From NCBI GenBank assembly GCA_002269645.1, contig NIVC01000152.1, positions 62,001 to 126,000 of the forward strand: a stretch of DNA of 64,000 nt. The letters run 5' to 3'. The stretch's first letter is position 1. Every line of letters begins with the position of its first letter. Both the position numbers and the translations under genes were made by a program. The notes beneath the pieces were generated by a model that searched no databases, had not been told where the DNA came from, and saw only the letters and a program-made list of their open reading frames with translations. Shown piece by piece: positions 1-58,075 of this stretch. This DNA is from Macrostomum lignano (lineage: Eukaryota).

Positions 1-2
1 AC

Positions 3-47
3 GAGCAGCTAAAGCGCTTGCTGGAACAGCGTCTTGGCAATGCTTGA
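3..47 (+). CDS. Possible C-terminal end of an upstream gene (EQLKRLLEQRLGNA*)
   Basis: Frame 3 reads as coiled-coil-like codons ending in TGA at 45-47, followed by AT-rich UTR-like sequence. Too short to identify. Confidence 0.25.
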   Translation, partial: EQLKRLLEQRLGNA

Positions 48-586
48 CTTCAGGTCTTGTTGATACTCGTATAGAAGCAACTCAAAAATCGTATTTATAC
101 ACCTTTCTATCATATTGGAAAGCTGTCTGGTACAGCTGTAATTATCATTCCAGCTCAAAGTTCGGTCCGGCCAGTTACTGAACAGATTTCTTATCGAATT
201 TCACAACATATAGCTTTCCAAATAAATATGTTTCAGGTTAAAAATTTGTTAGAAGTGTCGCATACTGCATATAGAAATGAGAAAAGTAAGTGAACCAGAG
301 CTGGCTATATACGTGGATTATTTATCAAATCGTGTCCTTGTTTATTATTTGAAAATCAACAAATACATGACATTTCATGACATTGTTAGCAACTAGGAGG
401 CTAAAGATCAAGCAAATGATAAGCATACCGGTTTCATGTTATACATACAACCACTCCTGCAATTGTTTATTGGCTAGTTAAGTCAAAGATTACGGTACTT
501 AATTATCTCTTCTAGCAACTGGGCTAAATAATGTTTTATTTTGGGGGGAAACATGTAAGTGTTGCTTGCTGTCCATAATTGAATCG

Positions 587-922
587 TTAGCAGCTGCTGT
601 CAGGTAAAGGGCAGCAATAATTACCAGATTCTCTCAGGTAGAGAGCGCGGCGATTGCTTGGCTGACAATGGTTGTTGATCTGGACAGTCACAGAATTGCC
701 GTTGCCGCAAATATTAACCAGAGAGCCGTACTGACTGATACTACTGGCAATAGTAGAATCTCTACTAATACCATTAGTACGGCGGGCTTCGGTTCGAGAC
801 TCTCTGACACTGCTGTTCGTGATGTTGTCTGACGTCTGTCTGGCGAGCTGTTTCCGACCGGCCTGACTTCGCATGGCCACATTCTGACTGTCGCTCTCGA
901 TTGGCTTTGTTGAGGTCTCCAT
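587..922 (-). CDS. Hypothetical 111-aa ORF or exon, Ser/Arg-rich, with a beta-arch/RHIM-like segment (VNICGNGNSVTVQINNH)
   Basis: Non-repetitive ORF with an ATG, relatively GC-rich against AT-rich flanks. No family recognised. Confidence 0.25.
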   Translation of the reverse strand: METSTKPIESDSQNVAMRSQAGRKQLARQTSDNITNSSVRESRTEARRTNGISRDSTIASSISQYGSLVNICGNGNSVTVQINNHCQPSNRRALYLRESGNYCCPLPDSSC

Positions 923-1339
923 TAGGTTTGGCTTTCTTTAGAGTAATTGCGACGCAGTTGCCGCAAATGTCGTGTTTATAGCAATTAAAGTGCCTAGTTA
1001 ATTTACACTTATTTCAGCTATTTGCTACACTAGCTCTGAGTTGAGAAACGAGGTCCTAAGAGCGTATATTGTGCTTTGAAAAGTTTGAGTCATCTTTAAA
1101 ATTGTACTAGCAAGAATTGCACCCGATGGCTTTGCCAGTACGTCAATTATGTCTTGAGCAGAAAGAATAAAAGTTTCTAATGAAGAATAATGGGTTTGTG
1201 CAATTTCTATTTTTACCCAAGCTTCTCAAGCTAGCTTCAATAGAACTCTTCACATTTGGTGTCGAATCACTATTTCATACTTACGTTGATGAAACCTGAT
1301 TAAATTTTAGTGCTTAAAACTAAGAATTTCTTGCCTCGC

Positions 1340-1590
1340 TTCGCACTCTTCTCCCTCCTCTCTCATTTCTCTCCCTCTCCTCTCATTCGATCCTCTCCCT
1401 CCTCCCCCATTCCTATCTCTCCCTCTCATTCCTCTCCCTCCCCTATCCTTCCTCTCCCTCCCTCTCATTCCTCTCCCTCCCCTATCCTTCCTCTCCCTCC
1501 CTCTCATTCCTCTCCCTCCCCTATCCTTCCTCTCCCTCCCTCTCATTCCTCTCCCACTCCAATCTTACTGTATACCTCTTCCTCCTGTTG
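1340..1590. repeat. CT-rich ~39-bp minisatellite
   Basis: Tandem unit gives a 13-aa periodicity (GGRGMRGRERKDR) in the ORF track. Confidence 0.85.
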
Positions 1591-2346
1591 AATCCCTCTC
1601 CCCTCTTATTCCGATCTTCTATTTATTGTACTACATGTAGATATACATTAGCCGAGAAATATTCAAGATACATGTAAAGTAAATGGAATATGGAAGCTAG
1701 GTTTTGTTAATATAATCAGAGGTTTCATTAAGGTTTCGCTTTCAGTATTTTTTTTTCATTGAAATTACGAGCATACAATTTTCATTAAATTCCTAAAACA
1801 TGAATTGATTTCGAACGAGGATCCAAAAGTCCCGAAGCTATTTAGCTTTTTGCTTCGGTTGCCTACAATCTTCCTGTCAATTACAGCTCTGCATCTCTTC
1901 CATTTTTTAATTGAATATCTCATTTTAGCATAAAAATGAAAGCTTTACTTCAAAACCCTAATTTTTATTTCGGTCAATTTTGCAGTGTTTGTGTTGGCAA
2001 ATAGGATCTCGAACAAAACAAGCTTCGGCTTTATCAACGCGGATGCAATAAAACAATTTTTTTTAAAGAATATTACTTATTCGCCTTTATTGTTAATATT
2101 TAACCCGAAAATTCAATTTTAAACAATAGTATTAACGTTGTTTCCTTTTTATTTATCCAATACATTTGGGTTTGTGCATCGTCTGCATCATTTTAGTTTC
2201 AGATTTCATGACTATTTTCAATTGTCCAAAGCAAAATTCTTATCTACCTTGATTTCCTGTTTAAGACAGATTTGTAAGGAATACTATTGTAGTAGTTCAT
2301 GTTCGTAGACTTTTACTGTACTTAAAGTATACAATTTTTTTAAAAA

Positions 2347-4544
2347 ATGAGCAAAAAGTTGCTTACAGAGCAAAACACCCTGCCTGATATATGTGTGCAT
2401 TTAAATGGAGTTGCTCCTGCTCCACGCAGAGACTTTTTCGACTTGAAGGTGTCATTGAAGCAGAAAAAGGTTTGTTGTATTTAGTACTTTTTCATTCTTG
2501 CCATAGGAACGCTAAAATTCTTAATAGAATAAATTCTTTGAATATGCTAGCTGCTATGGTATTTTTGCTTCACATTATCATTGACAATAATTTAGCAATT
2601 TTGGCAGTTAACAGTAATAAATCACAAATTATTATTAATAAATGAATATTTTTAGCTCTGTTTATTAGCAAAGTAAACAGAGTACATTGTTTCGTGTTGT
2701 GGGTCTTTGTTAGTATTTAGAGTTTCTTATTTAATTTCATATGTAAAACTCTACTATGAATTTCGCTGAAAAATTGTTTTAAAATGTTCAATTAAAATTG
2801 AAAACTAAGGTATTTTAATATCTGATTTGTCTTAAATTTTATTATTACTGTATTTTGCCTAGTTGAAAGCATTTTATATGTTATTAGCTTGCTAAATATT
2901 TATGTTTTATTGTATTCGGACAAAAAAACAAAAATTTGGTTTTTCCTATTGCAAGACATTTAAGGAAACTCATTTGTTTCATTTAGGTTATTTATTGAAG
3001 ACAGATATCCACCCATCCATTATTCACATGTATTATTTTAAATACAAAAACTTCTACTCTATATATACAATGCATTAGGCTTCAGTCAATCGTCTCCGAA
3101 CAGAAGCTTTAAAATGAATAAAACATTATTAGCTTGAACTATCATCTAATTTCACTAGGGCAGAATTCATACAATTACCTTCAAATCCAATGTGTTGGGC
3201 ATCGTGTAAGCAGCCTGTTCTACATGATTTATAAACTGAAAAAACGTCTGCACATTGCGCCTTGCCGCAAGTGAAAGCAAAGGGCAGTCACCCCTGAGCA
3301 CACAAACAGATACGTACCCAGGCACCCGCTTCTACAGGGTGTATAACAGTCCTGGCAACAATAAAATCAATAAAAAGACCATGGGTATATTCCGTCTGTA
3401 AAAAGACTTGTGATTGCACCGAAACGTTAGTGAACTACTAGATGTCAAACTCGCTAATGTACTTTATATTTTGTCTTCACCCACCCCGCAGGTGAGCCTG
3501 ATCAAGTGGATTATCACTTCTCGCCAGGAGGAGGGCAAACTGCGTCCCGCCGAAGTTACCGACAAGTTCGAAGATTTCCCTAGCGAAATGATGAACCGTA
3601 AGTTGCAACCAACTGTTTTTAATTCAATGATTTTTTCCTAACTAATTACCCTTCCCCCGGCTCCAGGCTACATACCTTACGTGTTCGGCAAAGACATTGT
3701 GCGGTACATCGAAGGCCTGATTGAAGGCAATTATGATTGGCTGGTCCGCCTACCTGACGATCTGCTTGTCTACCTGTTGACCTTTCTCAATCTGGAGGAC
3801 ATTGAACGATTGTCGCATGTTAGCACGCGATTGAAAATTGTGAGTTGGCTAATGTCTAAAAAAGCTACTTAGTAATCTTAGAAATCTTAACGATAGATTC
3901 ATAAATTAAAAACCAGGACCTCAGCTCCGGACAGCAGCACACTTTCGAACTTTCTAACTAGCAGTTGTGCGCAAGTTATAATAGATTCTTTCATAACCTC
4001 GAATGCTTCCCTGCAGATCTGCACTTCTGACGCGCTGTGGAAGAAGCTGTTCTATCTGCACATGCCGTCCCTGGTCAGCCCAGAGGTTGACTCTCTGGCC
4101 GATGAGAACGGTTGGAAGAGCGTCTTCTATTCGCGTATATTTGAGCGCAAAGTGAGCACAATCTGCCCTTCCTATTGCTGTTCAGGCTCATAGATCTTTG
4201 AAGACAGAGAGTTGCGCAATCGCTTGCACAATTTTATTTATTTCCAGCTCCGCGCCAAGCACCTGCTGCAGTCCCAAAGCAGCGAGGCATCGACGCCTCG
4301 GCTTACATCGGCGTCGACAATTTCTCGCGACTCGCCGACACCGTCGCGTTCGGTCAGCGCCGTGGCCGCAGCTGCCGACGGTCGGAGACGTCGTGGCGAT
4401 GATCAAATGGATGACGAAGATGAGGATATTGGCAGCGAAGGCATGGACGATGAGTCGCTGATGTCCTGGCGGTTGACGAGGACGCCGGCAGAGGAGAGAG
4501 AGCTGGGTCAGCAGGAGCTGGAGCTGGAGAGCGTTGTGGAATAA
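2347..4544 (+). CDS. FBXO36: F-box protein, FBXO36-like, 277 aa; join(2347..2469,3492..3597,3667..3839,4017..4151,4248..4544)
   Basis: All junctions are GT-AG and in phase (834 nt). N-terminal LNGVAPAPRRDFFDLKV resembles FBXO36 GQGPPPSKDYYQLLV. F-box: RLPDDLLVYLLTFLNLEDIERLSHVSTRLKIICTSDALWK. DSLADENGWKSVFY resembles RALAEDTGWRQLFF. Confidence 0.85.
3245..3360 (-). mobile_element. Diverged copy of dispersed repeat family A (TACACCCTGT core)
   Basis: The reverse complement carries tacaccctgt..gaagcg..gtgcctg.gtac..tgtgctcagg, as in the copy at 28720. Lies in FBXO36 intron 1. Confidence 0.5.
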
Positions 4545-4649
4545 ATTTCTGCAATTCTGATGAGCATATTTTTGACTCTTGCGAATTTTTACGATGAATT
4601 GAAAAACAGTCGGATAGGGAACATAGTGCGGGATTTGATGCAACTGCTG

Positions 4650-4915
4650 TGCAATTTAATGCAACTAGTTCAGAATTTGATGCAACTGGACTGAAGTTTG
4701 ATGCAACCGGTGTGCAATTTGATGCAACTGGAGTGAAGTTTGATGCAACTGCTGTGCAATTTGATGCAACTGGAGTGAAGTTTGATGCAACTGGTGTGCA
4801 ATTTGATGCAACTAGTGCAGAATTTGATGCAACTAGTGCGGAGTTTGCTGCAACTGGTGTGAAATTTGATGCAACTAGTGCGGAGTTTGATACAACTGGT
4901 GCAGAACTTGATGCA
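4650..4915. repeat. 21-bp minisatellite (tttgatgcaactggtgtgcaa) downstream of the FBXO36 stop
   Basis: About 12 tandem units, open on both strands (FDATGVK / CIKLHSS). Confidence 0.9.
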
Positions 4916-5432
4916 GCTTCTTCTGATGTTCCCAGCAAAGTGTACCAACTTTTTTACTTGCAACTCTTAGAGGTTAAAAGCAAGCAACCAAAAAATTTTA
5001 CTGGGTGCTTCTTGCGTTGGCTTTAGTCATCCTCATTCCCATATCCTTGCTACCTGTGCCTCTGTACTTCTCCGTCCACTAACGGATTTTTGATCTTTTG
5101 TAATCAATGTTTTCATTCTTTTGATCGATTTCTTTTGCGCGCGTTATGCAACAATACTAGAAACTTTCTACTGTAAGTACTATTTAATGCTTAAAACTAC
5201 TTGCGTTTCTCCTTTTATTTATTGAATTTTTTTCTTAGCTGTTGACGCAAAAAAATACACTGTGCTGTCACAGTGGCCCGGATAATTCGAATTATTAATT
5301 CCACGCTTTGCTGTTTTTATATTTAAACTTTGGAATAGACTTTTAGGTTTCGTGATTTTGTGATAATAAAGTGAGTCCACCTACCCAACCCGCTTCTTTG
5401 CAGCGGACGGGCCACCTTCCGGCGCCACAGCC

Positions 5433-7796
5433 ATGGACCATTTCGACATATCAAGCGGTGCTCCTGCCCTGCAGTGCTTCTCCAACCTTGAGGCCGGGCC
5501 GCCGCCCTTCGCCATGCTCAACATGATGGTTGACGAGCAAATCAGCAGCCGGCCCGAGGCTGGGCGGGAGTCCGCCTCATCGGAGACTGGAAGTTCAACA
5601 TCGGATGCGGAGTCTGAGAAATCGGTGGAGGAGCAGCAGCAGCAGCAGCAAGCACCTCCGGTGCAGCAGCAACTGTTGAGCAATCGCAGCGGCATCATCA
5701 GACCGCCCAGACCGGGAATTTCTCGTTTGCTTGAACAAAACGAAGAAGAGCAGCAGCAGCAGCAGGAGCAACAAATGCCAGAGGAGCAACAAATTTCCAG
5801 CATACCGAAGCCTAGAAATATTCGTCCGCCAGGGCAGAATCTGGAACAACGGCCGCAGCAGCAGCAGCAGGCAATTCAGGTGCAGCGACCACTGTTTGGC
5901 AAACACGGTGACATCGTCAAACCTCCCAGAGCGGCAATTTCTCGTCCTATTGAACAAAAGAAAGAAGAGCAACAGCAGCAGCAGCAAGTTCAACAGGCCC
6001 CTCCGCGTCCAAAACCATCCAGCATTTTATCTCCGGTGTCTGAGCGAAAACTGCAGCCACTGCGCCCGGCCTCTAAAGGGTCTCCCCCGGTCCCGGCTGA
6101 GCAGCAGCAGCAGGAGGTGCAGCTACTGGAGCAACAGCCGCAGAAGAAGACTTCACAAAACGATGACGTCTCGCTTGAAGAACAAAGACTCGAGCATCAA
6201 ACGAAGAAACAAGCCCCCGCTTCTTCTAGTAGCAGCGCTAGCAATGTTGCACCAGCAACAGCGGCAAATCAAACCAGCCTGTTTAATTCTGCCAGGGGCT
6301 CGACAGCGACCGCCGCCCCAACTACGAGCAGACAGGATACTCGATTCGACACTTCGAAACCGTCGCAAAGAAGCAACCTGTTTGGCAGCTTTGGCAGGAA
6401 CCAAGACTATTCCAATACAGGCTTCGGCAGGAACCAAGACTATTCCAATACAGGCTTCGGCAGGAACCAAGACTATTCCAATACAGGCTTCGGCAGGAAC
6501 CAAGACTATTCCAATACAGGCTTCGGCAGGAACCAAGACTATTCCAATACAGGCTTCGGCAGGAACCAAGACTATTCCAATGCAGGCTTCGGCAGGAAAC
6601 AAGACGACCATTCCAATACAGGCTTTAGCATTACGGCTCACAATGCCAATACGAATAGAGGCGGTGGCTTATTCGGCTCAGGTGACAACTCAAACACGGG
6701 TGTGTTCGGCTCAGGTGACAACTCAAACACGGGTGTGTTCGGCTCAGGTGACAACTCAAACACGGGTGTGTTCGGCTCAGGTGACAACTCAAACACGGGT
6801 GTGTTCGGCTCAGGTGACAACTCAAACACGGGTGTGTTCGGCTCGGGCAGTCCTGCCAGTTTCCGTCTCGGATTTGCCGAATCTTCATCTCGGATGCCGC
6901 CTGAGAAGCCGCCGCATTTCTGCTCCTGTTGCGCTGCCCATCGCGCTCAAGAAGAGCAGCAGCAGCTGCTGCAGCCGCAAGAGACGCTCCTGCTGCGCCA
7001 GTCGCTGCGCCAGGCAAGCGAGCTGTCCGCCCGCCTCACCGAGTCTCTCGAGCGCATCGAACGGCTGGCCTCAAGCACCACCGCCGCTGGTGCTGCCGCT
7101 TTGCCGCGCTCCCGTTGTCAGCCACCGTCGATTCCAGCGATGTCAATGACGGCTGCTCCGCCGCCGCCGTCCGCCTCGGTTGAATTCGGCGACATCAGCG
7201 ACGCCGAGGCCAGCGAGGAGCGCCGCGCCGATGCGCTGCGCCGCAACCTGCGCCCGGTGTTCACCGGCGCCGCGGCTTGTTCGAACGGCTCGTTGCTGGG
7301 CTCGAGTCCGACTGGCGACCTCCTGCCGCTGCAGTCGCCGGACGGTCGCTGGACGCCCGACAGTCTGCGCGGCCTGATGGACGTCGGCGCGCTGCGTCAA
7401 CTGCTGCGCGAACTCGGCGCCGCGTCTCTGGGCGCCTCGGTGTTCGCGGATCTGGAGTCGGCCATCTCAACGGCTGCCGTGCTGCTCGCCGTGGCCGTCC
7501 AGCTGCGCCTGTGGCCGCCGAAGCCGGAGGCCGAGGCGGAGGCCGGGCTCCAATCGACTGTCGAACGCAGTGCCGAACTCAATCCACATTTGAAGGCCGG
7601 AATGAAGCGAGCCTGCGAATGGATGCACAAGTTTGAGACTACTCAGCCGGATCTGCTGCAGCGGCTGGAGCTGGCCAGGTCTCAGGCTGAGCTCATGAGC
7701 GCCCTGGTGCACTGCCTGCGCCTGCAGGAGCAGCAGGCGCCGGGGAAGCAGCAGACAGGCGCCAAGTTGCCGGCTTTTGCTCCAAGGAAGAAGTAG
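5433..7796 (+). CDS. 787-aa intronless protein: polyQ and FG-repeat disordered region, a short coiled coil, and a C-terminal PARP4-like MVP-interaction (MINT/INT) domain
   Basis: Long ORF with in-frame stops upstream (5361-5369). The C-terminus aligns by eye with the PARP4 C-terminal domain: DLLPLQSPDGRW vs ELLSLQTEDGFW; LRQLLRELGAASLG vs LHSFLKQKGIQSLG; AISTAAVL vs LIATMLVL; MKRACEWMHKFETTQPDLLQRLEL vs IKQASEWVRRTEGQYPSICPRLEL. Confidence 0.8.
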   Translation: MDHFDISSGAPALQCFSNLEAGPPPFAMLNMMVDEQISSRPEAGRESASSETGSSTSDAESEKSVEEQQQQQQAPPVQQQLLSNRSGIIRPPRPGISRLLEQNEEEQQQQQEQQMPEEQQISSIPKPRNIRPPGQNLEQRPQQQQQAIQVQRPLFGKHGDIVKPPRAAISRPIEQKKEEQQQQQQVQQAPPRPKPSSILSPVSERKLQPLRPASKGSPPVPAEQQQQEVQLLEQQPQKKTSQNDDVSLEEQRLEHQTKKQAPASSSSSASNVAPATAANQTSLFNSARGSTATAAPTTSRQDTRFDTSKPSQRSNLFGSFGRNQDYSNTGFGRNQDYSNTGFGRNQDYSNTGFGRNQDYSNTGFGRNQDYSNTGFGRNQDYSNAGFGRKQDDHSNTGFSITAHNANTNRGGGLFGSGDNSNTGVFGSGDNSNTGVFGSGDNSNTGVFGSGDNSNTGVFGSGDNSNTGVFGSGSPASFRLGFAESSSRMPPEKPPHFCSCCAAHRAQEEQQQLLQPQETLLLRQSLRQASELSARLTESLERIERLASSTTAAGAAALPRSRCQPPSIPAMSMTAAPPPPSASVEFGDISDAEASEERRADALRRNLRPVFTGAAACSNGSLLGSSPTGDLLPLQSPDGRWTPDSLRGLMDVGALRQLLRELGAASLGASVFADLESAISTAAVLLAVAVQLRLWPPKPEAEAEAGLQSTVERSAELNPHLKAGMKRACEWMHKFETTQPDLLQRLELARSQAELMSALVHCLRLQEQQAPGKQQTGAKLPAFAPRKK
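6383..6848 (+). repeat. Two coding 33-bp tandem arrays: (FGRNQDYSNTG)x~7 and (FGSGDNSNTGV)x~5
   Basis: Near-perfect nucleotide repeats, in frame within the 787-aa ORF. Confidence 0.95.
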
Positions 7797-7904
7797 AGCG
7801 TTGGACTGCGCGAATCGCTGCTTTTTGTGTCTTTTTTATTGCTTTTTGCGTGCTTCTGTCGAACAATATAAGCGAATCAGACTTGATTTTTCTATTTAAT
7901 TCTC

Positions 7905-10120
7905 ATTTGAACTGAGTAGTATAGATGTCTACCAGTCTAGTATAGATATCTACCAGTCTAGAATAGATATCTACCAGTATAGTATAGATTTCTACCAGTC
8001 TAGTATAAATATCTACCAGTCTAGTATAGATATCTGCCATTCTAGTATAGATATCTGCCAGTCTAGTATAGATATCTGCCATTCTAGTATAGATATCTAC
8101 CAGCCTAGTGTAGATATCTGCCATTCTAGTATAGATATCTACCAGCCTAGTATAGATATCTACCAAACTCAATACAGATATCTACCAGTCTAGTATAAAT
8201 ATCTACCAGTCTAGTATAGATATCTACCAGTCTAGTATAGATATCTACCAGTCTAGTATAGATATCTACCAGTCTAGAATAGATATCTACCAGTCTAGTA
8301 TAGATATCTGCCATTCTAGTATAGATATCTACCAGTCTAGTATAGATATCCACCAGTCTAGTATAGATATCTGCCATTCTAGTATAGATATCTACCAGTC
8401 TAGTATAGATATCTACCAGCCTAGCATAGATATCTGCCTTTCTAGTATAGATATCTACCAGCCTAGCATAGATATCTGCCATTCTAGTATAGATATCTAC
8501 CAGCCTAGTATAGATATCTGCCATTCTAGTATAGATATCTGCCAGTCTAGTATAGATATCTGCCATTCTAGTATAGATATCTACCAGCCTAGTATAGATA
8601 TCTGCCATTCTAGTATAGATATCTACCAGCCTAGTATAGATATCTGCCATTCTAGTATAGATATCTACCAGCCTAGTATAGATATCTACCAAACTCAATA
8701 CAGATATCTACCAGTCTAGTATAGATATCTACCAGCCTAGCATAGATATCTGCCATTCTAGTATAGATATCTACCAGCCTAGCATAGATATCTGCCATTC
8801 TAGTATAGATATCTGCCATTCTAGTATAGATATCTGCAATTCTAGTATAGATATCTGCCATTCTAGTATAGATATCTGCCAGTCTAGTATAGATATCTGC
8901 CATTCTAGTATAGATATCTACCAGCCTAGTATAGATATCTGCCATTCTAGTATAGATATCTGCCAGTCTAGTATAGATATCTGCCATTCTAGTATAGATA
9001 TCTACCAGCCTAGTATAGATATCTACCAAACTCAATACAGATATCTACCAGTCTAGTATAGATATCTACCAGCCTAGCATAGATATCTGCCATTCTAGTA
9101 TAGATATCTACCAGCCTAGCATAGATATCTGCCATTCTAGTATAGATATCTGCCATTCTAGTATAGATATCTGCAATTCTAGTATAGATATCTGCCATTC
9201 TAGTATAGATATCTGCCAGTCTAGTATAGATATCTGCCATTCTAGTATAGATATCTACCAGCCTAGTATAGATATCTGCCATTCTAGTATAGATATCTAC
9301 CAGCCTAGTATAGATATCTACCAAACTCAATACAGATATCTACCAGTCTAGTATAGATATCTAACAGTCTAGTATAGATATCTAACAGCCTAGTATAGAT
9401 ATCTACCAGCCTAGTATAGATATCTACCAGCCTAGCATAGATATCTGCCATTCTAGTATAGATATCTACCAGCCTAGCATAGATATCTGCCATTCTAGTA
9501 TAGATATCTGCCATTCTAGTATAGATATCTGCAATTCTAGTATAGATATCTGCCATTCTAGTATAGATATCTGCCAGTCTAGTATAGATATCTGCCATTC
9601 TAGTATAGATATCTACCAGCCTAGTATAGATATCTGCCATTCTAGTATAAATATCTGCCAGTCTAGTATAGATATCTGCCATTCTAGTATAGATATCTAC
9701 CAGCCTAGTATAGATATCTACCAAACTCAATACAGATATCTACCAGTCTAGTATAGATATCTACCAGCCTAGCATAGATATCTGCCATTCTAGTATAGAT
9801 ATCTACCAGCCTAGCATAGATATCTGCCATTCTAGTATAGATATCTGCCATTCTAGTATAGATATCTGCAATTCTAGTATAGATATCTGCCATTCTAGTA
9901 TAGATATCTGCCAGTCTAGTATAGATATCTGCCATTCTAGTATAGATATCTACCAGCCTAGTATAGATATCTGCCATTCTAGTATAGATATCTACCAGCC
10001 TAGTATAGATATCTACCAAACTCAATACAGATATCTACCAGTCTAGTATAGATATCTAACAGTCTAGTATAGATTTCTAACAGCCTAGTATAGATATCTA
10101 CCAGCCTAGTATAGATATAT
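7905..10120. repeat. 21-bp satellite (agtatagatatctaccagtct and variants) with higher-order structure
   Basis: About 100 units. The marker ccaaactcaatacag recurs at spacings of 526, 337, 295, 400 and 295 bp. Confidence 0.95.
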
Positions 10121-10878
10121 AAGGCACAGTCAATGCATTGATGGTAAATATTCTCCAGCCATTATTTAAACAGCTTAATATTACTATTGAAGCGATATTT
10201 CGACTATCTCTGTTTTACCCCACAATAACAGCCATTACATTAACCAAATTGTAAGCTTGTGAGTGTCATATTTTTATATTATTTATTCAGCACAGAATAG
10301 AACCATTTTAATTTTTTTGATTTTTTTTATAAACTTGTTTGACCTTTGAATATGATTGCCAGTTGTTTTTTTATTTAAACACATTCAGAATATGTTATCC
10401 ATTACACAGATTTTTGTGTGCCGTGTGTGAACAGTCATGTTGAACACTAATAGCACAAACATACGTCTCACCTGACTGGCTTGTGGATTATTTGATCGGG
10501 TCTTGCCCTAGAATCGTTTTATTCTCGAACTTCTTTATTTTTATCCACTTTATTGTATGTTTATTATTATTACCGAAAGTACAGCTTTCCAAGACACAAA
10601 TATATAGAACATTTTGTGTGCACTGCACTTTTAACCGTCGTTAAAACGTATTTACAACTGTATATGCATGGATGCTGTGTCAACATAGGTTTTTCAATTG
10701 TACTTTTAGTTACCGTATAAGTATTATAGTTAGTCATTCGTCAGTAGCAACAAAAAAGGCAAAGAGGATTAATTTCTTATCAAGGTTCAAAAGTTGGGAA
10801 ATATGGTGTTCCTTGTATATTTCACTGTTCGAAAATTGTTGTTGGGAAAAGTTTCTTAAAGCAAAGATATCGATTTGT

Positions 10879-12207
10879 TCAGGTGAAGAAGTTTTCGCCG
10901 CTTCGCTTTCCGAACCTGCGGATTGATTGAAGCAAAGGGTTGAGCAGTTGAGCGTTTTAGTAAACTGCAATTTAATAACTGGCTTGTGAATAATTTGTAT
11001 CTATTTGCTTAGCTCCATGACATGGCCAGACAATCACCGCGTCGTTTGGATCTAGCCTGATACATTGGTTAAATTATGTCACTATCTTGCTGTTGCTATT
11101 TTTAGCTCATATACATGACGCTGAGCCAGCCAATCGCAGCACGATTTGGATAGAGAATTTAAGTAACTATCGTACTGAGGCTATTTTTAGCTCATATCGT
11201 CCAGCCTAGAGCCAGCCAATGGCGGCACAGCTTGGATAGAGAGGTTTATTCCGTCACTATCTGGCTGTTGTTATTTTTAGATCGTTGTAAAAAAAGGTTT
11301 TCGTATCGGCAATTCGTTTCATTTATTTTTTGTTCTGTCTTTAGATTCACTTCCGGAATCGTGACCTGCTTCCGGTGCTTTCAGATAGCTTTTGAGTTTC
11401 TCAGGCTGAATTTTTAGAAAAATTCCGTCGGACTTGAGAGGATCCATTAATCCAGTTAACTGGATTATAAATTAACATTAATACAGCTCCTCCATTTACC
11501 CATGAGCTTACCTGGGACGCAGCACCAGCTCCATGTAACTGCGCAGGTTTTTCATGTAGAAGCGCAGGCGCTCCGAGTCCTCCTGCTGGGTGCCGGGCGG
11601 TGTCGCCGACATGGCCAGCAACTCCTTCATTACCTGGAGCTCCGCAGCTTCGTCAGGATAGCCCTGCGGCTGACGATGGGGCATTGGACTGACTGACTGA
11701 CTGACTGACTGACTGACTGACTGACTGACTGACTGACTGACTGACTGACTGACTGACTGACTGACTGACTGACTGACTGACTGACTGACTGACTGACTGA
11801 CTGACTGACTGACTGACTGACTGACTGACTGACTTGAGTGGGTGGGTGACTGACTGACTGACTGACTGACTTGAGTGGGTGGGTGACTGACTGACTGACT
11901 GACTGACTTGAGTGGGTGGGTGACTGACTGACTGACTGACTTGAGTGGGTGGGTGACTGACTGACTGACTGACTGACTTGAGTGGGTGGGTGACTGACTG
12001 ACTGACTGACTCGAGTGAGACTGACTGACAAACTGACCCAAACTGACCTGACCTGACCTGACCTGACCTGACCTGACCTGACGTGATCTGACCTGACCTG
12101 ACCTGACCTGCCCCTGACCTTACCTGGAGTGGCAAGGCTCGGCAGCAGCAGTTGATGAAGCAGATACCCAGAATGCTCACAAGCAGTAGTGCTCTGCTGT
12201 CTACCAT
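10879..12207 (-). CDS. npf: Neuropeptide F/Y precursor, ~92 aa; complement(join(10879..10915,11512..11669,12124..12207)); exon-2 acceptor uncertain
   Basis: Signal peptide MVDSRALLLVSILGICFINCCCRA. Mature end LRFYMKNLRSYMELVLRPR|F-GKR, with Gly amidation donor and dibasic site. A phase-2 intron lies in the Arg codon before F, the position conserved in NPY/NPF genes. Confidence 0.9.
11688..12120. repeat. (TCAG)n and (GTCAG)n microsatellites filling NPF intron 1
   Basis: Pure GACT tract 11688-11832, then a mixed tract, then a (GACCT)n tract next to the donor. Confidence 0.95.
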
Positions 12208-13014
12208 GATTATTGCTTTGAGTTTGCCTCGCAAAATTTTTTTTACAAAAAAACAGTTTTTTCTTTGGTGAAGGATTTTCGGTGTCTTACGGGTGAAATC
12301 GAAAAATTCACAGATCTGTTCGCCTTTTATGGCCACCCGCTCGCCCCCCTCTTTTAATCCGCTTCCCAATCTCCCCAAAGTGGGCGGTGCAACTCCTTTT
12401 TTAAAGATTTACCGCTTGGCAAAGTTGCAATTAAAAAATTGAAAGGTTTTTTGAGCAGAAGAAATACAGTTTTTTCTATAATCCTGTTGTTTGTTTTTTG
12501 CAAATCCTACAAATTTTCAGCCTAAAAAGACAAAAAAAGCAGTGTCTGCCAACCAGCTAGACTACTTGGTAATACATGCATGAGTAGTCAGTAGCACATA
12601 TTTTCTTCAAAAATAACGGCAAAGGCAGAAGAGAATGCAATATTTATTAACTAGATTTCAAAAGAATATATAAGCCTAAAGCGACAAAGTTTTATTGCGC
12701 ATCAAAGTTGCATATTAATATTAATGACGGGGCTATTTAATACCTATAATGAAGCTACTCGTAAATTGTAAAACCGAAGACACCCTGAGACTGTTGGGGG
12801 GTCTGGCGACTATTGACTGCACTGCTACAAATTTATTTAGCGTATCTACAGAACACAAAGTTTATATTTAGTAAACTCCCGTGACAGCCCCTGTCGCTCA
12901 AAATCCTCTTTCACAATCCGTGTTGGACAGGCTGACTGGCTGACTCCTAGGATTCAGAGCTGACCTGCGAGACAGTCATTCAGATCTGACACCGACGACC
13001 TGAGGGTAGTGAGT

Positions 13015-13462
13015 TAATGAGTGAGATCATGAGTGCGTTCATGAGTGAGATCATGCTTGAGATCATGCGTGAGTTTATGAGTGAGATCATGAGTGAGATC
13101 ATGAGTGAGATCATGAGTGAGATCATGAGTGAGATCATGAGTGAGATCATGAGTGAGATCATGACTGAGATCATGACTGAGATCATGACTGAGATCATGA
13201 GTGAGATCATGAGTGAGATCATGAGTGAGATCATGAATGAGATCATGAGTGAGTGAGATCATGAGTGAGATCATGAGTGAGATCATGAGTGAGATCATGA
13301 GTGAGATCATGAGTGAGATCATGAGTGAGATCATTAGTGAGATCATTAGTGAGATCATGAGTGAGATCATGAGTGAGATCATTAGTGAGATCATTAGTGA
13401 GATCATGAATGAGATGATGAGTGAGATGGTGAGTGAGATCATGAGTGAGATCATGAGTGAGT
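13015..13462. repeat. 12-bp minisatellite (gagtgagatcat) just 3' of the RhoGEF stop
   Basis: About 36 units, each with a TCATGA palindrome. Produces the SEIM/ISLM ORF artefacts. Confidence 0.95.
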
Positions 13463-13488: not shown

Positions 13489-21149
<7,661 letters not shown>

Positions 21150-21960
21150 TTTGTTTTGAAGCAGAAAAAGCACACAGGGCAAAGCGCAGGATTTCTACAG
21201 TCCGGAGATGCGGTGGCGGGAGGCTAAAGCTTATGGATAGGGGGACGCAAGGGTTGCGGGTTAAAAAAGGAGAAGCAACTGCAGTCTTCTCGGCCTCTGA
21301 TTGGCTGTCTCTCCCGTTATCTACGGTCACGCGCTGAGCCAAGGCGTTCTAAAGCTGGCATCTGGAATGCTGACTCTACTGCAGCCAAAAACCCGATTGA
21401 GGCTGACGCTGTCCTGTCTATCTCCCTTTGTCAATCGCTAGCAACAGTGGGATTTCATGTTTTCAACGTCAGCCTCAATTAGATCGAAAATGAGTTGGTA
21501 ACTCCAGGTTGCGGTTTTAGAATTCCTTGGCTACGCTTGTGCCGTGCCTCGTCGCCTCTCTCTCTAAACCAACGTCAACCTCTGGTGTGTGAGAAATCCA
21601 GGATCTGAACTGCGATTTCAAGCCTCTGCCCGACTCTCCCAGATCCTCCCTGATTCTCCCTACCTACCCCCCCCCCCTAGTTCTTTCTCTCTCCCACCGC
21701 GTAGCTCTACCCCTGCTCACCTGACAGGCAAGTGATCAATCATCGCCACCCCCTGATAAGGCGCGCACGGTTTGGAGCCGGTCTGCTTAAAGCTGGCGGA
21801 ATATTTTAGTAATAAAAGGAATCTCAACTTCTCCACTTTTATCAGAGTTGGCTATCAGGGTGGGCGCTCTCTGGGCAGAGTGCAGCTGTGTTGAGCTGTG
21901 TTGAGAGGGCACGCAGCTCTGCTAATCTTATACCTGCGATTGGACTGTCCAATGCTGTTC

Positions 21961-23056
<1,096 letters not shown>

Positions 23057-23419
23057 CTAGCCCGCTTTCTTTAGCAGAATCTTAACGCCTGGTCCAGTCT
23101 AGGTAATAGATCGAAAATCGATAAATCACTGTTTATTCTTACTGGTTTTCCTATATTTCAATTTGACATTTGAATGACTTAGTACTTTTCAATAGTACTT
23201 TGTTAAGTGAAAAATGTCATATGATTGCCTTGAGTAGAAATTCAAATCGATCGACCGGTCAGACTGTCATGAATGAGAGCCAGCTTGACCGCTGTCTGGC
23301 GTTCTCGCTTGGTCGTCATGGAAACTATAAAATTGGCCAATGTGAGTGGGTAAATTTTGAATAATGAGATTTTGAATCTGCTATTTTTGGAGAGGAAGCT
23401 AAGATTCGCGTCATGCAGG

Positions 23420-29487: not shown

Positions 29488-30500
29488 CGCACGGCTAAAG
29501 AGTGCAGCAACGACCAAGACACGAGTGGGCTGAGCGAAGCGCACGAACGTCTATGGTCTTTGCTGCACTCAAAAGCCGTGCGTCGACATCATTTGCAGGA
29601 CAAATTTCTGTTTTATGTCCTTTATTGCTTGGGCGAAAGAGGCCAAGAGCACCTGCAGCATCTGACACGACGAGATGCATTGGAGCTGCACACCGACTCT
29701 GATGGTAAGGAGTTCTACTGTCTCCCGCCTCTTCCGTCTAAGAATAAGTCCGCGGATCCAGTGAGAAGTAAAGCAAAACCCGACAACAAGCAGGCAAGGA
29801 TTTACGATACTGAAAATGTACGACGGTATCTAGACCTTCTACCAGTTGAAACCAAGGATAACCACCTATTTCCACGGCCACTGGCAAACTCTGCGAACGG
29901 AAGTCCTACGTATTCAACGAAGCAGAATCGCGGTGTCAACTATCTTGTTCGATTCATGCATAACTTGAGCAAGAAGGCTGGGCTATCAAAAATGTATTCC
30001 AACCATTGCACCAGGTAGTACGACTAATGTTTTTGATCTCGAAAATAACAGATCTTAGATCTTTAATTTATCTGAGAGAAAACATTGTAAACTACATGCA
30101 TTAGTAATGTAATCATCATTGATCATATTTTCTTAGGGTCACCAGGATTACGGATCTAGAGGCCGCGGGACATAGCATGGCCGACATTATGTCCATCACC
30201 GGCCAGACATCTGAACGAACGGCACGCAGGTACCTTACAAAACGTTTGCAAGCGAGCAGCAAGCGAGCATCTCTGCAAGCGAGCAGCTATGCTGTGACGT
30301 CGGCATTGGCACTGCAAACTAAAGAAGAAGAAGTTAAAGGTGACCAGGCCGGACACGTAGGACCAAGCGATTCTGGGGCCAGTGAGCTGGATGTCAATGT
30401 GGTGTCAAACATGCAAATCACCGGCGTTAATCAGGAACATCTGGCGATGGCGAAGTTTAGCTTTAACAACTGCACCTTCTCCGAATGCAAATTCGTTTGA
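29488..30500 (+). mobile_element. Crypton-type (DUF3504-like) tyrosine recombinase; join(<29488..30014,30137..30500); 5' part unresolved or degraded
   Basis: LQDKFLFYVLYCLGERGQEHL (catalytic R box), LFPRP, and NYLVRFMHNLSKKAGLSKMYSNHCTR|VTRITDLEAAGHSMADIMSITGQTSERTARRY (HxxR...Y). The tail FSFNNCTF is typical of this family. The GT-AG intron 30015-30136 restores the frame. Confidence 0.85.
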
Positions 30501-38503: not shown

Positions 38504-40231
38504 ATGGCCGATCTCGAAGAAGCTGAACGAATCGCTCTGAAGAACCGGGAACGATTCAAAAACGATCTGATTAAGCCGAAACTCAATCCCGATCAGGTGA
38601 TGCGCTACTATGACGACTGGAGCAGCACCTACGACGACACTATGTACACCGGCGAGCTCGGCTACTCGAACTTCACCGGCCTGTGCGAAGTCCTGACCGA
38701 GCTGCTGCCGAAAGACGCTGACAGGTCGAAACTGCGAGCCCTGGACCTCGGCTGCGGCACCGGCATCATCGGCAAGCAGCTTCGGGAGCTGCTCGGCTTC
38801 CGGCTGGTTGACGGAGTCGACGGCAGTCCCGGGATGATCGCCCAGGCCGAGAAGCTGGGCATCATCTGCCGCGGCTACGTTGAGATCGTTGAGAACCGCA
38901 GCCTGACTCAGGTGCCACATGGAGTCTACGATGTGGTGGTCAGCAAGGGCGCCTACGTGCCCAACCATGTGAAGCCGAACTCGCTGCCCTTCGTTGGCGA
39001 GCTGCTGAAGCCGGGTGCGATTTATTGATTGATATATTGATAGAAAGACTGATTGATTGGTTAATTGGTTAATTGATTGATTGATTGATTGACTGATGAT
39101 TGATGGTATGATTGATAGATGGAATGATTGATTGATTGATTGATTGATGGTATGATTGATAAATGGAAAATTGATTGATTGATTGATTGACTGATGATTG
39201 ATGGTATGATTGATAGATGGAATGATTGATTGATTGATTGATTGATGGTATGATTGATAAATGGAAAATTGATTGATTGATTGATTGACTGATGATTGAT
39301 GGTATGATTGATAAATGGAAAATTGATTGATTGATTGATTGATGGTATGATTGATAGATGGAATGACTGATTGATTGATTGATTGATTGATTGATGGTAT
39401 GGTTGATAGATGGAATGATTGATTGATTGATTGATTGATGGTATGATTGATAGATGGAATGATTGATTGACTGATTGACTGATTGATTGATTGGTGATTG
39501 ATTGATTGACTGATTGACTGATTGATTGATTGGTGATTGATTGATTGACTGATTGACTGATGATTGATTGATTGACTGATTGACTGATTGATTGATTGAT
39601 TGATTGATTGATGGTATGATTGATAGATGGAATGACTGATTGATTGATTGATTGATTGATTGATGGTATGGTTGATAGATGGAATGATTGATTGACTGAT
39701 TGACTGATTGATTGATGGTATGATTGATAGATGGAATGATTGATTGACTGATTGACTGATTGATTGATGGTATGATTGATAGATGGAATGATTGATTGAC
39801 TGATTGACTGATTGATTGATTGGTGATTGATTGATTGACTGATTGACTGATTGATTGATTGGTGATTGATTGATTGACTGATGATTGATTGACTGATTAA
39901 TTGATTGGTGATTGATTGATTGACTGATTGACTGATGATTGATTGATTGACTGGCTGGCTGGCTGATTACTGTTTAACTTATTGATTTATTTACTTACTA
40001 GTTAAATTAGTGTATGTCTCCCACTCTTGCCTCCCAAATCACCGCTCTGAAGGCGGGCTGCTGTGCACAGAGATCCGTCGCTCCGTAATTGAGGAGACGG
40101 ACATCGGCGAGATCGAGCCCGAGGCCAAGAAGATGGAGGCCTCCGGAGGCTGGAAAATACTCAAATGGCGTCACGAGTCGGTCTATAATCTCAACGTCCC
40201 AGGCTTCATCTACGTGCTCCAGAAGCTGTGA
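38504..40231 (+). CDS. METTL27: Class I SAM-dependent methyltransferase, METTL27/WBSCR27-like, 229 aa; join(38504..39014,40053..40231)
   Basis: YYDDWSSTYD, motif I LDLGCGTG, DGVDGSPGM, YDVVVSKGAYVPNHV and LLKPG|GLLC. In-phase intron (690 nt). Confidence 0.8.
39030..39965. repeat. (GATT)n-based compound microsatellite filling the methyltransferase intron
   Basis: GATT/GACT tetramers with recurrent ggtatgattgatagatggaat units. Confidence 0.95.
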
Positions 40232-42827: not shown

Positions 42828-55714
<12,887 letters not shown>

Positions 55715-56504: not shown

Positions 56505-58075
56505 ACTATCTGACTGACACAGACTCTCTGTCTGACTGACATAGCCTCACTGTCTGACTGACACAGCTCACTGTCTGACTGACACAGCTCACTGTCTGAC
56601 TGACACAGACTCTCTGTCTGACTGACATAGCCTCACTGTCTGACTGACACAGCTCACTGTCTGACTGACACAGCTCACTGTCTAACTGACACAGCCTCAC
56701 TGTCTGACTGACACAGCTCACTGTCTGGCTGACACAGCTCACTATCTGACTGACACAGCTCACTGTCTGGCTGACACAGCTCACTATCTGACTGACACAG
56801 CCACAATATCTGACCCACAGCAGCCAAAATACTGACCCACCGCAGCCACAATGCCTGACCCACAGCAGCCACAATGCTGACCCACAGCAGCCACAATGCT
56901 GACCCACAGAAGCCACACTGCTGACCCACCGCAGCCACAATGCTGACCCACCGCAGCCACAATGCTGATCCACAGCAGCCAAAATGCCTGACCCACAGCA
57001 GCCACAATGCTGACCCACAGCAGCCACAATGCTGACCCACCGCAGCCACAATGCTGACCCACAGCAGCCACAATGCTGACCCACAGCAGCCACAATGCTG
57101 ACCCACAGCAGCCACAATGCTGACCCACAGCAGCCACAATGCTGACCCACAGCAGCCACAATGCTGACCCACAGCAGCCACAATGCTGACCCACAGCAGC
57201 CACAATGCTGACCCACAGCAGCCACAATGCTGACCCACAGAAGCCACACTGCTGACCCACAGCAGCCACAATGCTGACCCACAGAAGCCACAATGCTGAC
57301 CCACAGAAGCCACACTGCTGACCCACCGCAGCCACAATGCTGACCCACAGCAGCCACAATGCTGAACCACAGCAGCCACAATGCTGATCCACAGCAGCCA
57401 AAATGCCTGACCCACAGCAGCCACAATGCTGACCCACAGCAGCCACAATGCTGACCCACAGCAGCCACAATGCTGACCCACAGCAGCCACAATGCTGACC
57501 CACAGCAGCCACAATGCTGACCCACCGCAGCCACAATGCTGACCCACAGCAGCCACAATGCTGACCCACAGAAGCCACACTGCTGACCCACCGCAGCCAC
57601 AATGCTGACCCACAGCAGCCACAATGCTGACCCACAGAAGCCACAATGCTGATCCACAGCAGCCAAAATGCCTGACCCACAGCAGCCACAATGCTGACCC
57701 ACAGCAGCCACAATGCTGACCCACAGCAGCCACAATGCTGACCCACAGCAGCCACAATGCTGACCCACAGCAGCCACAATGCTGACCCACAGAAGCCACA
57801 ATGCTGACCCACAGCAGCCACAATGCTGACCCACAGCAGCCACAATGCTGACCCACAGCAGCCACAATGCTGACCCACAGCAGCCACAATGCTGACCCAC
57901 AGCAGCCACAATGCTGACCCACAGCAGCCACAATGCTGACCCACCGCAGCCACAATGCTGACCCACAGCAGCCACAATGCTGACCCACAGAAGCCACAAT
58001 GCTGACCCACAGCAGCCACAATGCTGACCCACAGCAGCCACAATGCTGACCCACAGAAGCCACAATGCTGACCCA
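56505..58075. repeat. 21-bp array (ctgactgacacagctcactgt) followed by a 22-bp array (cacaatgctgacccacagcagc)
   Basis: About 55 units of the 22-mer end at the DEG/ENaC ATG. Confidence 0.95.

Follow-up and report, generated by a model that had tools for sequence, protein, structure and literature searches.

What vaults do has remained a puzzle for some 40 years. To our knowledge, PARP4 and TEP1 are the only proteins known inside vaults, and the MINT domain, which we know only within PARP4 and as an engineering tag, is the sole defined vault-targeting module. Major vault protein (MVP) binding, as far as we know, is also the only function characterised for this domain. In human PARP4 (vPARP), MINT is preceded by a repetitive and disordered stretch, and the domain itself (also called INT) spans residues 1562-1724 (PDB 9bw6, 9bw7 and 11jf; PF26156). 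It contacts MVP through S1614, K1618, Q1682 and R1689 together with a basic patch of helices 4-5 (PMC12280208). K1618 is the salt-bridge partner of MVP D214, the side chains of S1614 and R1689 bond the MVP backbone, and the helix 7-8 segment was also reported in contact with MVP (PMC12280208). According to Lodwick et al., the PARP4-contacting residues of MVP occur in vertebrates only (PMC12280208).

Here, we analyzed a gene of the flatworm Macrostomum lignano that encodes a MINT-like domain in a different setting. The window, which is the whole stretch of 64,000 nucleotides analyzed, is identical to M. lignano contig NIVC01000152.1. Exactly as the original prediction had it, the + strand carries an uninterrupted ORF of 787 codons at 5433..7796, which starts with an ATG in a good context (GCCATGG) and ends with a TAG stop at 7794-7796. 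The ORF forms one coding exon, inside which no GT[AG]AG donor-like site was found. It corresponds to GenBank PAA89344.1 ("hypothetical protein"; locus tag BOX15_Mlig000001g6, assembly GCA_002269645.1), whose model is transcript-based and whose CDS carries a 5′-partial flag with an annotated start at 5406, such that the annotated N-terminus, DGPPSGATAMDHF, is encoded from nt 5406 onward. GC3 was 0.66 for the ORF as a whole and 0.81 for its C-terminal domain, resembling the other exons of the window. The 787-aa ORF is an independent, transcribed M. lignano gene with a single coding exon. An exhaustive HMMER search of 1.84 billion representative proteins returned the protein itself as the sole match, a word-indexed homologue search using the C-terminus gave no relatives, and the protein is a singleton in 90% clustering. 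As judged from these searches, the gene is fast-evolving or lineage-restricted, with orthologues undetectable among the representative proteins.

The transcript model begins exactly at a splice acceptor, TTGCAG (5398..5403, +), in front of which the outron or intron contains the in-frame stops TGA TAA TAA (5361..5369, +); both the stops before the ATG and the acceptor ending at 5403 had been claimed beforehand and were read directly in the sequence, the stops also in the frame translation. The acceptor motif of spliced-leader (SL) trans-splicing in M. lignano is [T/C]TNCAG (PMC8629364), and gene boundaries (TBONE) in this species were placed at SL sites with the help of SL reads and poly(A) data (PMC5730564, PMC8629364). 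TTGCAG matches the motif, and a spliced leader, which the original prediction had offered as an alternative explanation of this acceptor, is the better fit. Judged from the annotated start and the motif, the 5′ end of the mRNA most likely arises from SL trans-splicing at 5398-5403. Translation would then start at the ATG at 5433; the SL itself ends in an AUG, which is out of frame.

Upstream on the same strand, the GCA_002269645.1 annotation contains a gene (2347..4544, +) with a 277-aa product and its own stop at 4542-4544, in which Pfam detected F-box-like (E=7e-5) and F-box (E=4e-4) domains. Its stop lies 889 bp from the ATG at 5433 and 860 bp from the acceptor. It had been predicted that an FBXO36 gene ends about 890 bp away on the same strand; the distance and the strand proved correct, and the identity of the neighbour stands at the level of the F-box. 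A 21-bp minisatellite of 13.5 copies (4633..4915; TRF) occupies part of the 860-bp spacer, which measures ~577 bp without it. M. lignano operons have been defined by a repeat-adjusted spacing of <1 kb (PMC8629364). The gene starts at a [T/C]TNCAG acceptor and lies within <1 kb, repeat-adjusted, of its same-strand neighbour, and it therefore shows both features of an operon gene. The F-box gene and the ORF gene probably constitute an operon-like unit with the latter as the downstream member. Apart from the F-box gene, the annotation contains no called genes within 10 kb on either side.

Conversely, annotation or assembly could be at fault, and the ORF could be the terminal exon of a complete PARP4-like gene with catalytic, VIT and vWA exons farther upstream, as the 5′-partial flag of the GenBank CDS and a GTAAG donor-like site at 5173 might suggest. 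However, the stretch before this donor lacks an ATG and is interrupted in frame by a stop at 5091-5093, such that it could represent 5′ UTR only. Moreover, the complete, separate F-box gene with its own stop intervenes at 2347-4544, no genes are called for ~7 kb farther upstream of it, and the transcript model begins exactly at the SL-type acceptor. Pfam signals of PARP, VIT, vWA and BRCT were absent from the selected + strand open stretches of nt 1-5432 and 7797-12500. We consider such an artefact very improbable, and the idea that the ORF is merely the 3′-most exon of PARP4 was rejected on account of the intervening F-box gene, the SL-type acceptor start and the lack of a PARP, VIT, vWA or BRCT signal in the selected flanks. 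A stand-alone architecture, namely a MINT-like domain without ADP-ribosyltransferase, BRCT, VIT or vWA domains, is supported by the model that starts at the acceptor, by the separate upstream gene and by the lack of these domains in the selected flanks. The absence of BRCT, PARP, VIT and vWA, as had been claimed, was found in the product as well as in the selected + strand flanks, and in this respect the flatworm protein differs from PARP4. It instead resembles engineered INT-tagged vault cargo, in which an unrelated polypeptide is joined to a C-terminal MINT-type domain with no other part of PARP4. Unlike such cargo, the flatworm protein is the product of a natural gene, the part in the position of the cargo is disordered and Q/FG-rich, and its packaging is putative.

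The MINT-like domain comprises aa 626-770 (7308..7742, +), is predicted to be all-helical, and aligns with PARP4 ~1572-1715. Its conserved blocks are LLxLQxxDGxW, G..SLG, I.T..VL and N...K.A.EW....E...P....RLEL, within which the motifs LLxLQxxDGxW, SLG, I.T..VL, K.A.EW and E...P....RLEL are common to the flatworm and PARP4 domains; identity to PARP4 MINT was ~30-34% over 116-127 colinear residues. When the last 229 aa were compared by phmmer with 177,635 PDB sequences, the sole match was human PARP4 1572-1695 (E=0.037, 17.4 bits), which falls within MINT 1562-1724. The Smith-Waterman score was 100, as against 27.9±4.5 (maximum 53) in 5000 shuffles, none of which reached the observed score (z=16); z was still 10.3 once the generic LQxxDGxW motif had been removed. 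In composition-adjusted BLASTP, a C-terminal fragment of PARP4 from a second vertebrate source matched at E=4e-7 with 30% identity over 124 aa, and when the six-frame translation of the window was searched by tblastn with human MINT, 7308-7676 was the only match (E=2e-7). In hhalign, the probability was 93.2% with E=2.8e-7 over 116 columns. The predicted match to the PARP4 C-terminus was thus borne out by phmmer, Smith-Waterman, BLASTP, tblastn and hhalign. Relative to the human domain, the flatworm loops are longer by 5-7 residues (WPPKPEA) at one point and shorter by 3 residues at another, and these indels adjoin human loops 1587-1593 and 1646-1661, which are flexible or deleted in the cryo-EM model (PMC12280208).

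That two helical segments rich in Leu and Ala match by chance or through their composition would be compatible with the modest HMMER score (17.4 bits, E=0.037) and with the structure predictions. AF2 gave ~8 helices at low confidence for the domain (pLDDT 43.7 from the single sequence and 52.1 from a 3-row alignment), and Foldseek of both low-confidence models against the PDB gave no match at E<0.9. Against this, the shuffles preserved composition, the BLASTP value was adjusted for it, hhalign gave E=2.8e-7, and the similarity consists of three independent colinear segments, each significant alone. The match in the unbiased PDB scan was also unique and lay exactly on the MINT domain. We regard a chance similarity as extremely improbable and rejected it on the values of z=16, BLASTP E=4e-7 and hhalign E=2.8e-7. 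By these sequence comparisons, aa ~626-770 is a real, although remote and divergent, homologue of the PARP4 MINT domain.

Family models and wider searches place the protein at a distance from curated relatives. Neither the full protein, at E≤10, nor three of its C-terminal sub-fragments matched any Pfam domain, which is uninformative on MINT since the library was without PF26156 and a vertebrate PARP4 fragment likewise scored nothing. In precomputed Pfam assignments, PF26156 was present on two vertebrate PARP4 fragments and absent from PAA89344.1, indicating that the flatworm protein, unlike PARP4 MINT, lies outside the curated family boundary. Searching for homologues of the human MINT fragment gave two Logan fragments only, in a database that includes vertebrate proteomes; a metagenome scan with the MINT alignment gave 207 pattern matches, of which 0 were confirmed, and a literature search for PF26156 found no described relative.

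Next, the MVP-contacting residues were compared. In the alignment, two of the four were kept (S1614 as S665 and R1689 as R744), and the other two were lost, K1618 being replaced by Ser and Q1682 by Thr. Only one of the four basic residues of the helix 4-5 patch was retained (K1608, as Arg), and the domain has a net charge of -4. The strongest conservation, K.A.EW...E...P....RLEL, coincided with the helix 7-8 segment. The flatworm host also differs from that of PARP4 MINT, whose structurally defined MVP interface was reported as vertebrate-specific (PMC12280208). Concerning vaults in flatworms, vault RNA (vtRNA) was reported in M. lignano (PMC8824774), and MVP and PARP4 were reported in other flatworms (PMC10993521, PMC3762200). 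A homologue search with MVP gave at least 120 matches, and all those listed were vertebrate. Rfam detected neither a vault RNA nor any other family in the window, and a literature search on M. lignano MVP and Macrostomum vaults found nothing relevant besides PMC8824774.

These residues bear on whether the domain has a partner other than MVP. The MINT-like fold may have been kept as a general helical interaction module, which PARP4 recruited for MVP only in the vertebrate lineage, and the Q/FG-rich part may be a scaffold unrelated to vaults, for example in a condensate or at the nuclear pore. The loss of K1618, Q1682 and the basic patch, the reported restriction of the PARP4-contacting MVP residues to vertebrates (PMC12280208), and FG repeats that resemble the GLFG repeats of Nup98 at the low-complexity level are all consistent with such a role. 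Nevertheless, conservation peaks in helix 7-8, the segment that contacts MVP, and S1614 and R1689 are kept. No known nucleoporin domain or other domain was detected, and we know of no function other than MVP binding characterised for this domain anywhere. On balance, a partner other than MVP seems possible but rather doubtful. The flatworm protein may instead travel in vaults as a naturally occurring passenger that has no enzymatic activity.

The remainder of the protein is of low complexity, as claimed in the original prediction. It comprises ~580 residues with a Q/E/P-rich part, an S/T/A-rich part and then ~14 FG repeats, followed by a linker; the whole protein contains 16 FG dipeptides. The Q/E/P-rich region (aa 66-250; 5628..6182, +) is 25% Q with five Q4-6 runs, and a module, I(I/V)(R/K)PPR..ISR..EQ..EEQQQQQ, occurs in it three times. 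The FG-repeat region (aa 317-472; 6381..6848, +) has 14 FG and holds two in-frame 33-bp arrays detected by TRF. The first, GFGRNQDYSNT x7 (6388-6625), has units that are 96% identical, and the second is G(V/L)FGSGDNSNT x5-6 (6672-6844; 100% identity). The annotated product is one repeat unit shorter, indicating that the copy number of the FG array is polymorphic. The S/A/P-rich linker (aa 471-625; 6843..7307, +) has a probable helix at aa ~505-550 (EEQQQLLQPQETLLLRQSLRQASELSARLTESLERIERL), as predicted from sequence. After the MINT-like domain, a basic C-terminal tail (aa 771-787; 7743..7793, +) with a net charge of +5 ends in ...PAFAPRKK. A 21-bp minisatellite of ~105 copies (7917..10118; TRF) starts 120 bp past the stop codon and bounds or invades the 3′ UTR.

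The FG-repeat region showed a low-complexity resemblance to the GLFG repeats of Nup98 (E=2.4e-4). Similar to GLFG-type FG-nucleoporins, it has charge-poor N/S/T/G-rich spacers and regular FG motifs including GLFG and GVFG. Unlike them, the FG part is only ~150 residues long and is built from two tandem arrays of 11-residue units that are very young, and Pfam and PDB searches detected neither a GLEBS nor an autoproteolytic, a coiled-coil or any other nucleoporin domain, such that the match is one of low complexity only.

The repeats also raise the possibility that the gene is a young or decaying by-product, in which a C-terminal piece duplicated from an ancestral PARP4-like gene and joined to expanding coding minisatellites is transcribed as an operon passenger with little or no selected function. 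In this case, one would expect what is seen in the FG arrays, which are very young minisatellite expansions, 96-100% identical and polymorphic in copy number, in a genome saturated with minisatellites (TRF). The lack of an orthologue among the 1.84 billion representatives and the singleton 90% cluster point the same way, and the stretch before MINT in human PARP4 is likewise repetitive and disordered. However, the 2.36-kb ORF is still open with a good ATG context, and both array periods (33 bp) are multiples of three, unlike those of most other arrays in the window (TRF). Furthermore, the GC3 of 0.81 in the domain is like that of bona fide exons, and conservation is concentrated in discrete motifs over ~600 My of divergence. 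We therefore consider a functionless by-product quite unlikely. The resemblance to PARP4 extends to the arrangement, in which an all-helical domain (~8 helices in the low-confidence prediction here) stands at the C-terminus after a long disordered repetitive region.

The reading that we tentatively favor, at somewhat less than an even chance, is that this independent, probably SL trans-spliced gene encodes a protein whose C-terminal MINT-like domain docks a Q/FG-rich polypeptide in the vault lumen. The domain would dock inside the vault barrel, against its wall at MVP repeats R3-R5, as PARP4 MINT does, and would thereby tether the disordered polypeptide in the lumen, where it would be a minor vault component that is not an enzyme. 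The tethered polypeptide could serve as a cohesive matrix or a cargo adaptor, or could occupy the sites of a PARP4 orthologue. A further proposal, which is speculative and on present evidence unlikely, is that vault targeting by MINT is ancient and modular, older than the vertebrates, and that the flatworm protein, as the first natural client other than PARP4, fills the lumen with a disordered, cohesive phase rich in Q and FG. Transport receptors that bind FG could be captured there, as could RNA-binding proteins or other cargo.

If the flatworm domain binds MVP, vault targeting would be modular in nature, and the origin of MINT would be pushed back to at least the bilaterian ancestor, which would contradict the suggested late vertebrate innovation of the PARP4-vault association (PMC12280208). 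It would also provide a defined polypeptide, endogenous to the vault lumen, in an animal amenable to genetics, as transgenesis and knock-down are routine in M. lignano (PMC5730564). If MVP is not bound, the MINT fold still has a life outside PARP4. Were MINT indeed an ancient vault signal, the protein would offer a molecular handle on vault contents, and the old link between vaults and nuclear-pore transport would be revived.

The predicted ORF of 787 codons was found at 5433–7796 (+) in the ORF listing of the window, running from ATG to TAG. Its ATG lies in a GCCATGG context, 29 nt downstream of an AG acceptor (TTGCAG, 5398–5403, +), and three in-frame stops (TGA TAA TAA, 5361–5369, +), likewise anticipated in the original prediction, were seen in the sequence and its frame translation upstream of the acceptor. 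Donor-like sites (GT[AG]AG) were absent within the ORF. GC3 was 0.66 over the ORF and 0.81 in its C-terminal domain, in keeping with the 0.77–0.82 of the window's other recognisable exons (RhoGEF, methyltransferase and ASC channel). The acceptor fits the M. lignano spliced leader (SL) acceptor consensus, [T/C]TNCAG (PMC8629364). The 35-nt SL ends in AUG; if joined at 5404, this AUG would be out of frame with the ORF and would open a 41-codon uORF (5404–5530, +) overlapping the main start. Thus, the ATG at 5433 is the likely start. A donor-like GTAAG is located at 5173; were it used in cis instead, the stretch upstream of it, which contains an in-frame stop (5091–5093) and no ATG, would be 5′ UTR at most.

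With the last 202 residues as query, an exhaustive HMMER search across 1.84 billion representative proteins retrieved one protein, P0001, which is the GenBank product of this gene, PAA89344.1, and a singleton in 90% clustering. The contig (NIVC01000152.1, GCA_002269645.1) and the window were base-for-base identical across the 17,796 nt compared, which places the first base of the window near contig position 62,001. The annotated CDS corresponds to 5406–7796; since it begins two bases past the acceptor, it is flagged 5′-partial (DGPPSGATA-MDHF...). This CDS has 2391 nt, enough for 796 aa, yet the protein is 785 aa long: one repeat unit, 33 nt, is left out of the transcript mapping. PAA89344.1 lacks one 11-residue repeat (YSNAGFGRKQD) that is present in the genome array at 6388–6625 and was modelled as a 33-nt gap, indicating a copy-number polymorphism of the repeat between the assembly and the source of the transcriptome. 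RNA-seq underlies the gene models of M. lignano, whose boundaries were cut at experimentally mapped SL and poly(A) sites (PMC5730564).

The C-terminal match to the MVP-interacting (MINT) domain of PARP4, the core of the original prediction, was borne out by several comparisons. When the last 229 residues were compared by phmmer with every PDB sequence, the sole match was human PARP4 1572–1695 (E=0.037), which falls inside MINT (1562–1724). The Smith-Waterman score against this segment was 100, compared with 27.9±4.5 for shuffles (n=5000, maximum 53; z=16). Composition-adjusted BLASTP against P0002, an independent vertebrate PARP4 C-terminal fragment carrying Pfam PF26156, gave 33.9 bits (E=4e-7, 30% identity across 124 aa). 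The profile comparison proposed earlier, performed by hhalign with a small PARP4 profile, agreed (probability 93.2%, E=2.8e-7, 116 columns). The similarity persisted after removal of the generic LQxxDGxW motif (z=10.3), and in part-by-part shuffling the middle and C-terminal parts each scored alone (z=4.6 and 8.8). Furthermore, 7308–7676 was the only tblastn match of human MINT in the whole window. In the human MINT cryo-EM structure, loops 1587–1593 and 1646–1661 were too flexible for modelling (PMC12280208), and both alignment indels adjoin them. Judged from these alignments, aa ~626–770 (nt 7308–7742) very probably represent a genuine, though remote, MINT homologue. Among precomputed Pfam matches, PF26156 was present on P0002 and on P0003, another vertebrate PARP4 fragment, and absent from PAA89344.1. 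Evidently, the curated model falls short of this product, and the domain is a divergent MINT relative rather than a curated family member. Structure prediction of the domain gave ~8 helices in models whose confidence (pLDDT 43.7 and 52.1) was too low to judge the fold, and with which Foldseek returned no matches. A word-indexed protein search with the 124-aa human PARP4 query retrieved only two short Logan fragments, despite vertebrate proteomes in the database, so a lack of matches in this kind of search is weak evidence.

The rest of the protein was of low complexity, as had been claimed: by composition it comprises an acidic, S-rich part (aa 1–75), a Q/E/P-rich part (Q 25%) with a module repeated three times (aa 66–250), an S/T/A-rich part (aa 251–320), and an FG part (aa 317–472) holding 14 of the 16 FG dipeptides and two 11-residue tandem arrays. 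A Pfam scan of this portion found no domain, and PDB resemblance outside the MINT-like domain was confined to Nup98 GLFG repeats at low-complexity level. The FG arrays are encoded by 33-bp minisatellites (unit identity 96% and 100% by TRF). The period of both is divisible by three, unlike that of most other arrays in this minisatellite-rich window.

Upstream lies a separately annotated 277-aa F-box gene (2347–4544, +; Pfam F-box E=7e-5 and 4e-4). Its stop and the acceptor are 860 bp apart, and a 21-bp minisatellite (4633–4915, TRF) takes up 283 bp of this spacer. Operons have been defined by a repeat-adjusted spacing below 1 kb and an SL-spliced downstream gene (PMC8629364), and the spacing of this pair falls within that limit. 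No further called gene was present within 10 kb on either side in the GCA_002269645.1 annotation. Pfam scanning of selected + strand open stretches (nt 1–5432 and 7797–12500) found no PARP, VIT, vWA, or BRCT similarity, in line with the absence of such exons in the original prediction. The transcript-based annotation and the sequence therefore support a stand-alone architecture, of which we are confident. As to a PARP4 orthologue, the flatworm product has none of the PARP4 N-terminal domains and so does not qualify as one.

Micro- and minisatellite arrays occur at extreme density throughout the window, for example at 1350–1555, 4633–4915, 11687–12126, 13008–13461, 15336–17380, 18185–18764, 19382–19838, 21888–23085, 44056–45595, 52260–53178, 53836–55159, and 56506–58309. 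A 21-bp minisatellite (7917–10118, ~105 copies, 88% matches) starts 120 bp past the ORF stop and yields long spurious minus-strand ORFs (LVDIYTR...); neither AATAAA nor ATTAAA occurs within 500 nt downstream of that stop. Because most long listed ORFs stem from satellite arrays, ORF length alone is no evidence of a gene here. Other coding features were a RhoGEF (DH) open stretch of 311 aa followed by Q-rich low complexity (13489–14424, −; Pfam E=2.5e-20), absent from the genes called in the public record of the overlapping locus; a 174-aa class I SAM-dependent methyltransferase ORF (38504–39028, +; Methyltransf_25 E=3.6e-9); and three exons of an ASC/DEG-ENaC amiloride-sensitive sodium channel family gene (58065–58751, 59793–60806, and 61729–62277, +), which span the N-terminal, middle, and C-terminal portions of the Pfam model. 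A 152-aa ORF (29560–30018, +) ending ...GLSKMYSNHCTR had no Pfam match; it may resemble tyrosine-recombinase-derived domains of the Crypton/DUF3504 type in their C-terminal portion.

To our knowledge, MINT has been described solely as the PARP4 C-terminus and as the INT tag that loads engineered vaults. A limited literature search found no natural protein joining an unrelated polypeptide to MINT, and the PAA89344.1 record is an unannotated hypothetical protein. The best-conserved block (K.A.EW...E...P....RLEL) maps to the helix 7–8 segment, which contacts MVP in human MINT. Side chains of human S1614 and R1689 bond the MVP backbone (PMC12280208), and both are kept in the alignment as S665 and R744. 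Vault RNA has been reported from M. lignano (PMC8824774), and MVP and PARP4 from other flatworms (PMC10993521, PMC3762200). On the other side, human K1618, the salt-bridge partner of MVP D214 (PMC12280208), is replaced by Ser and Q1682 by Thr; the helix 4–5 patch retains just one of its four basic residues, and the net charge of the domain is −4. The PARP4-contacting MVP residues were reported as confined to vertebrates (PMC12280208). Among the matches listed in an MVP homologue search, all were vertebrate MVPs. Speculatively, kept backbone-directed contacts together with co-evolved side-chain pairs would reconcile these points for and against. Residence of the product in vaults is a possibility to which we give slightly less than an even chance.
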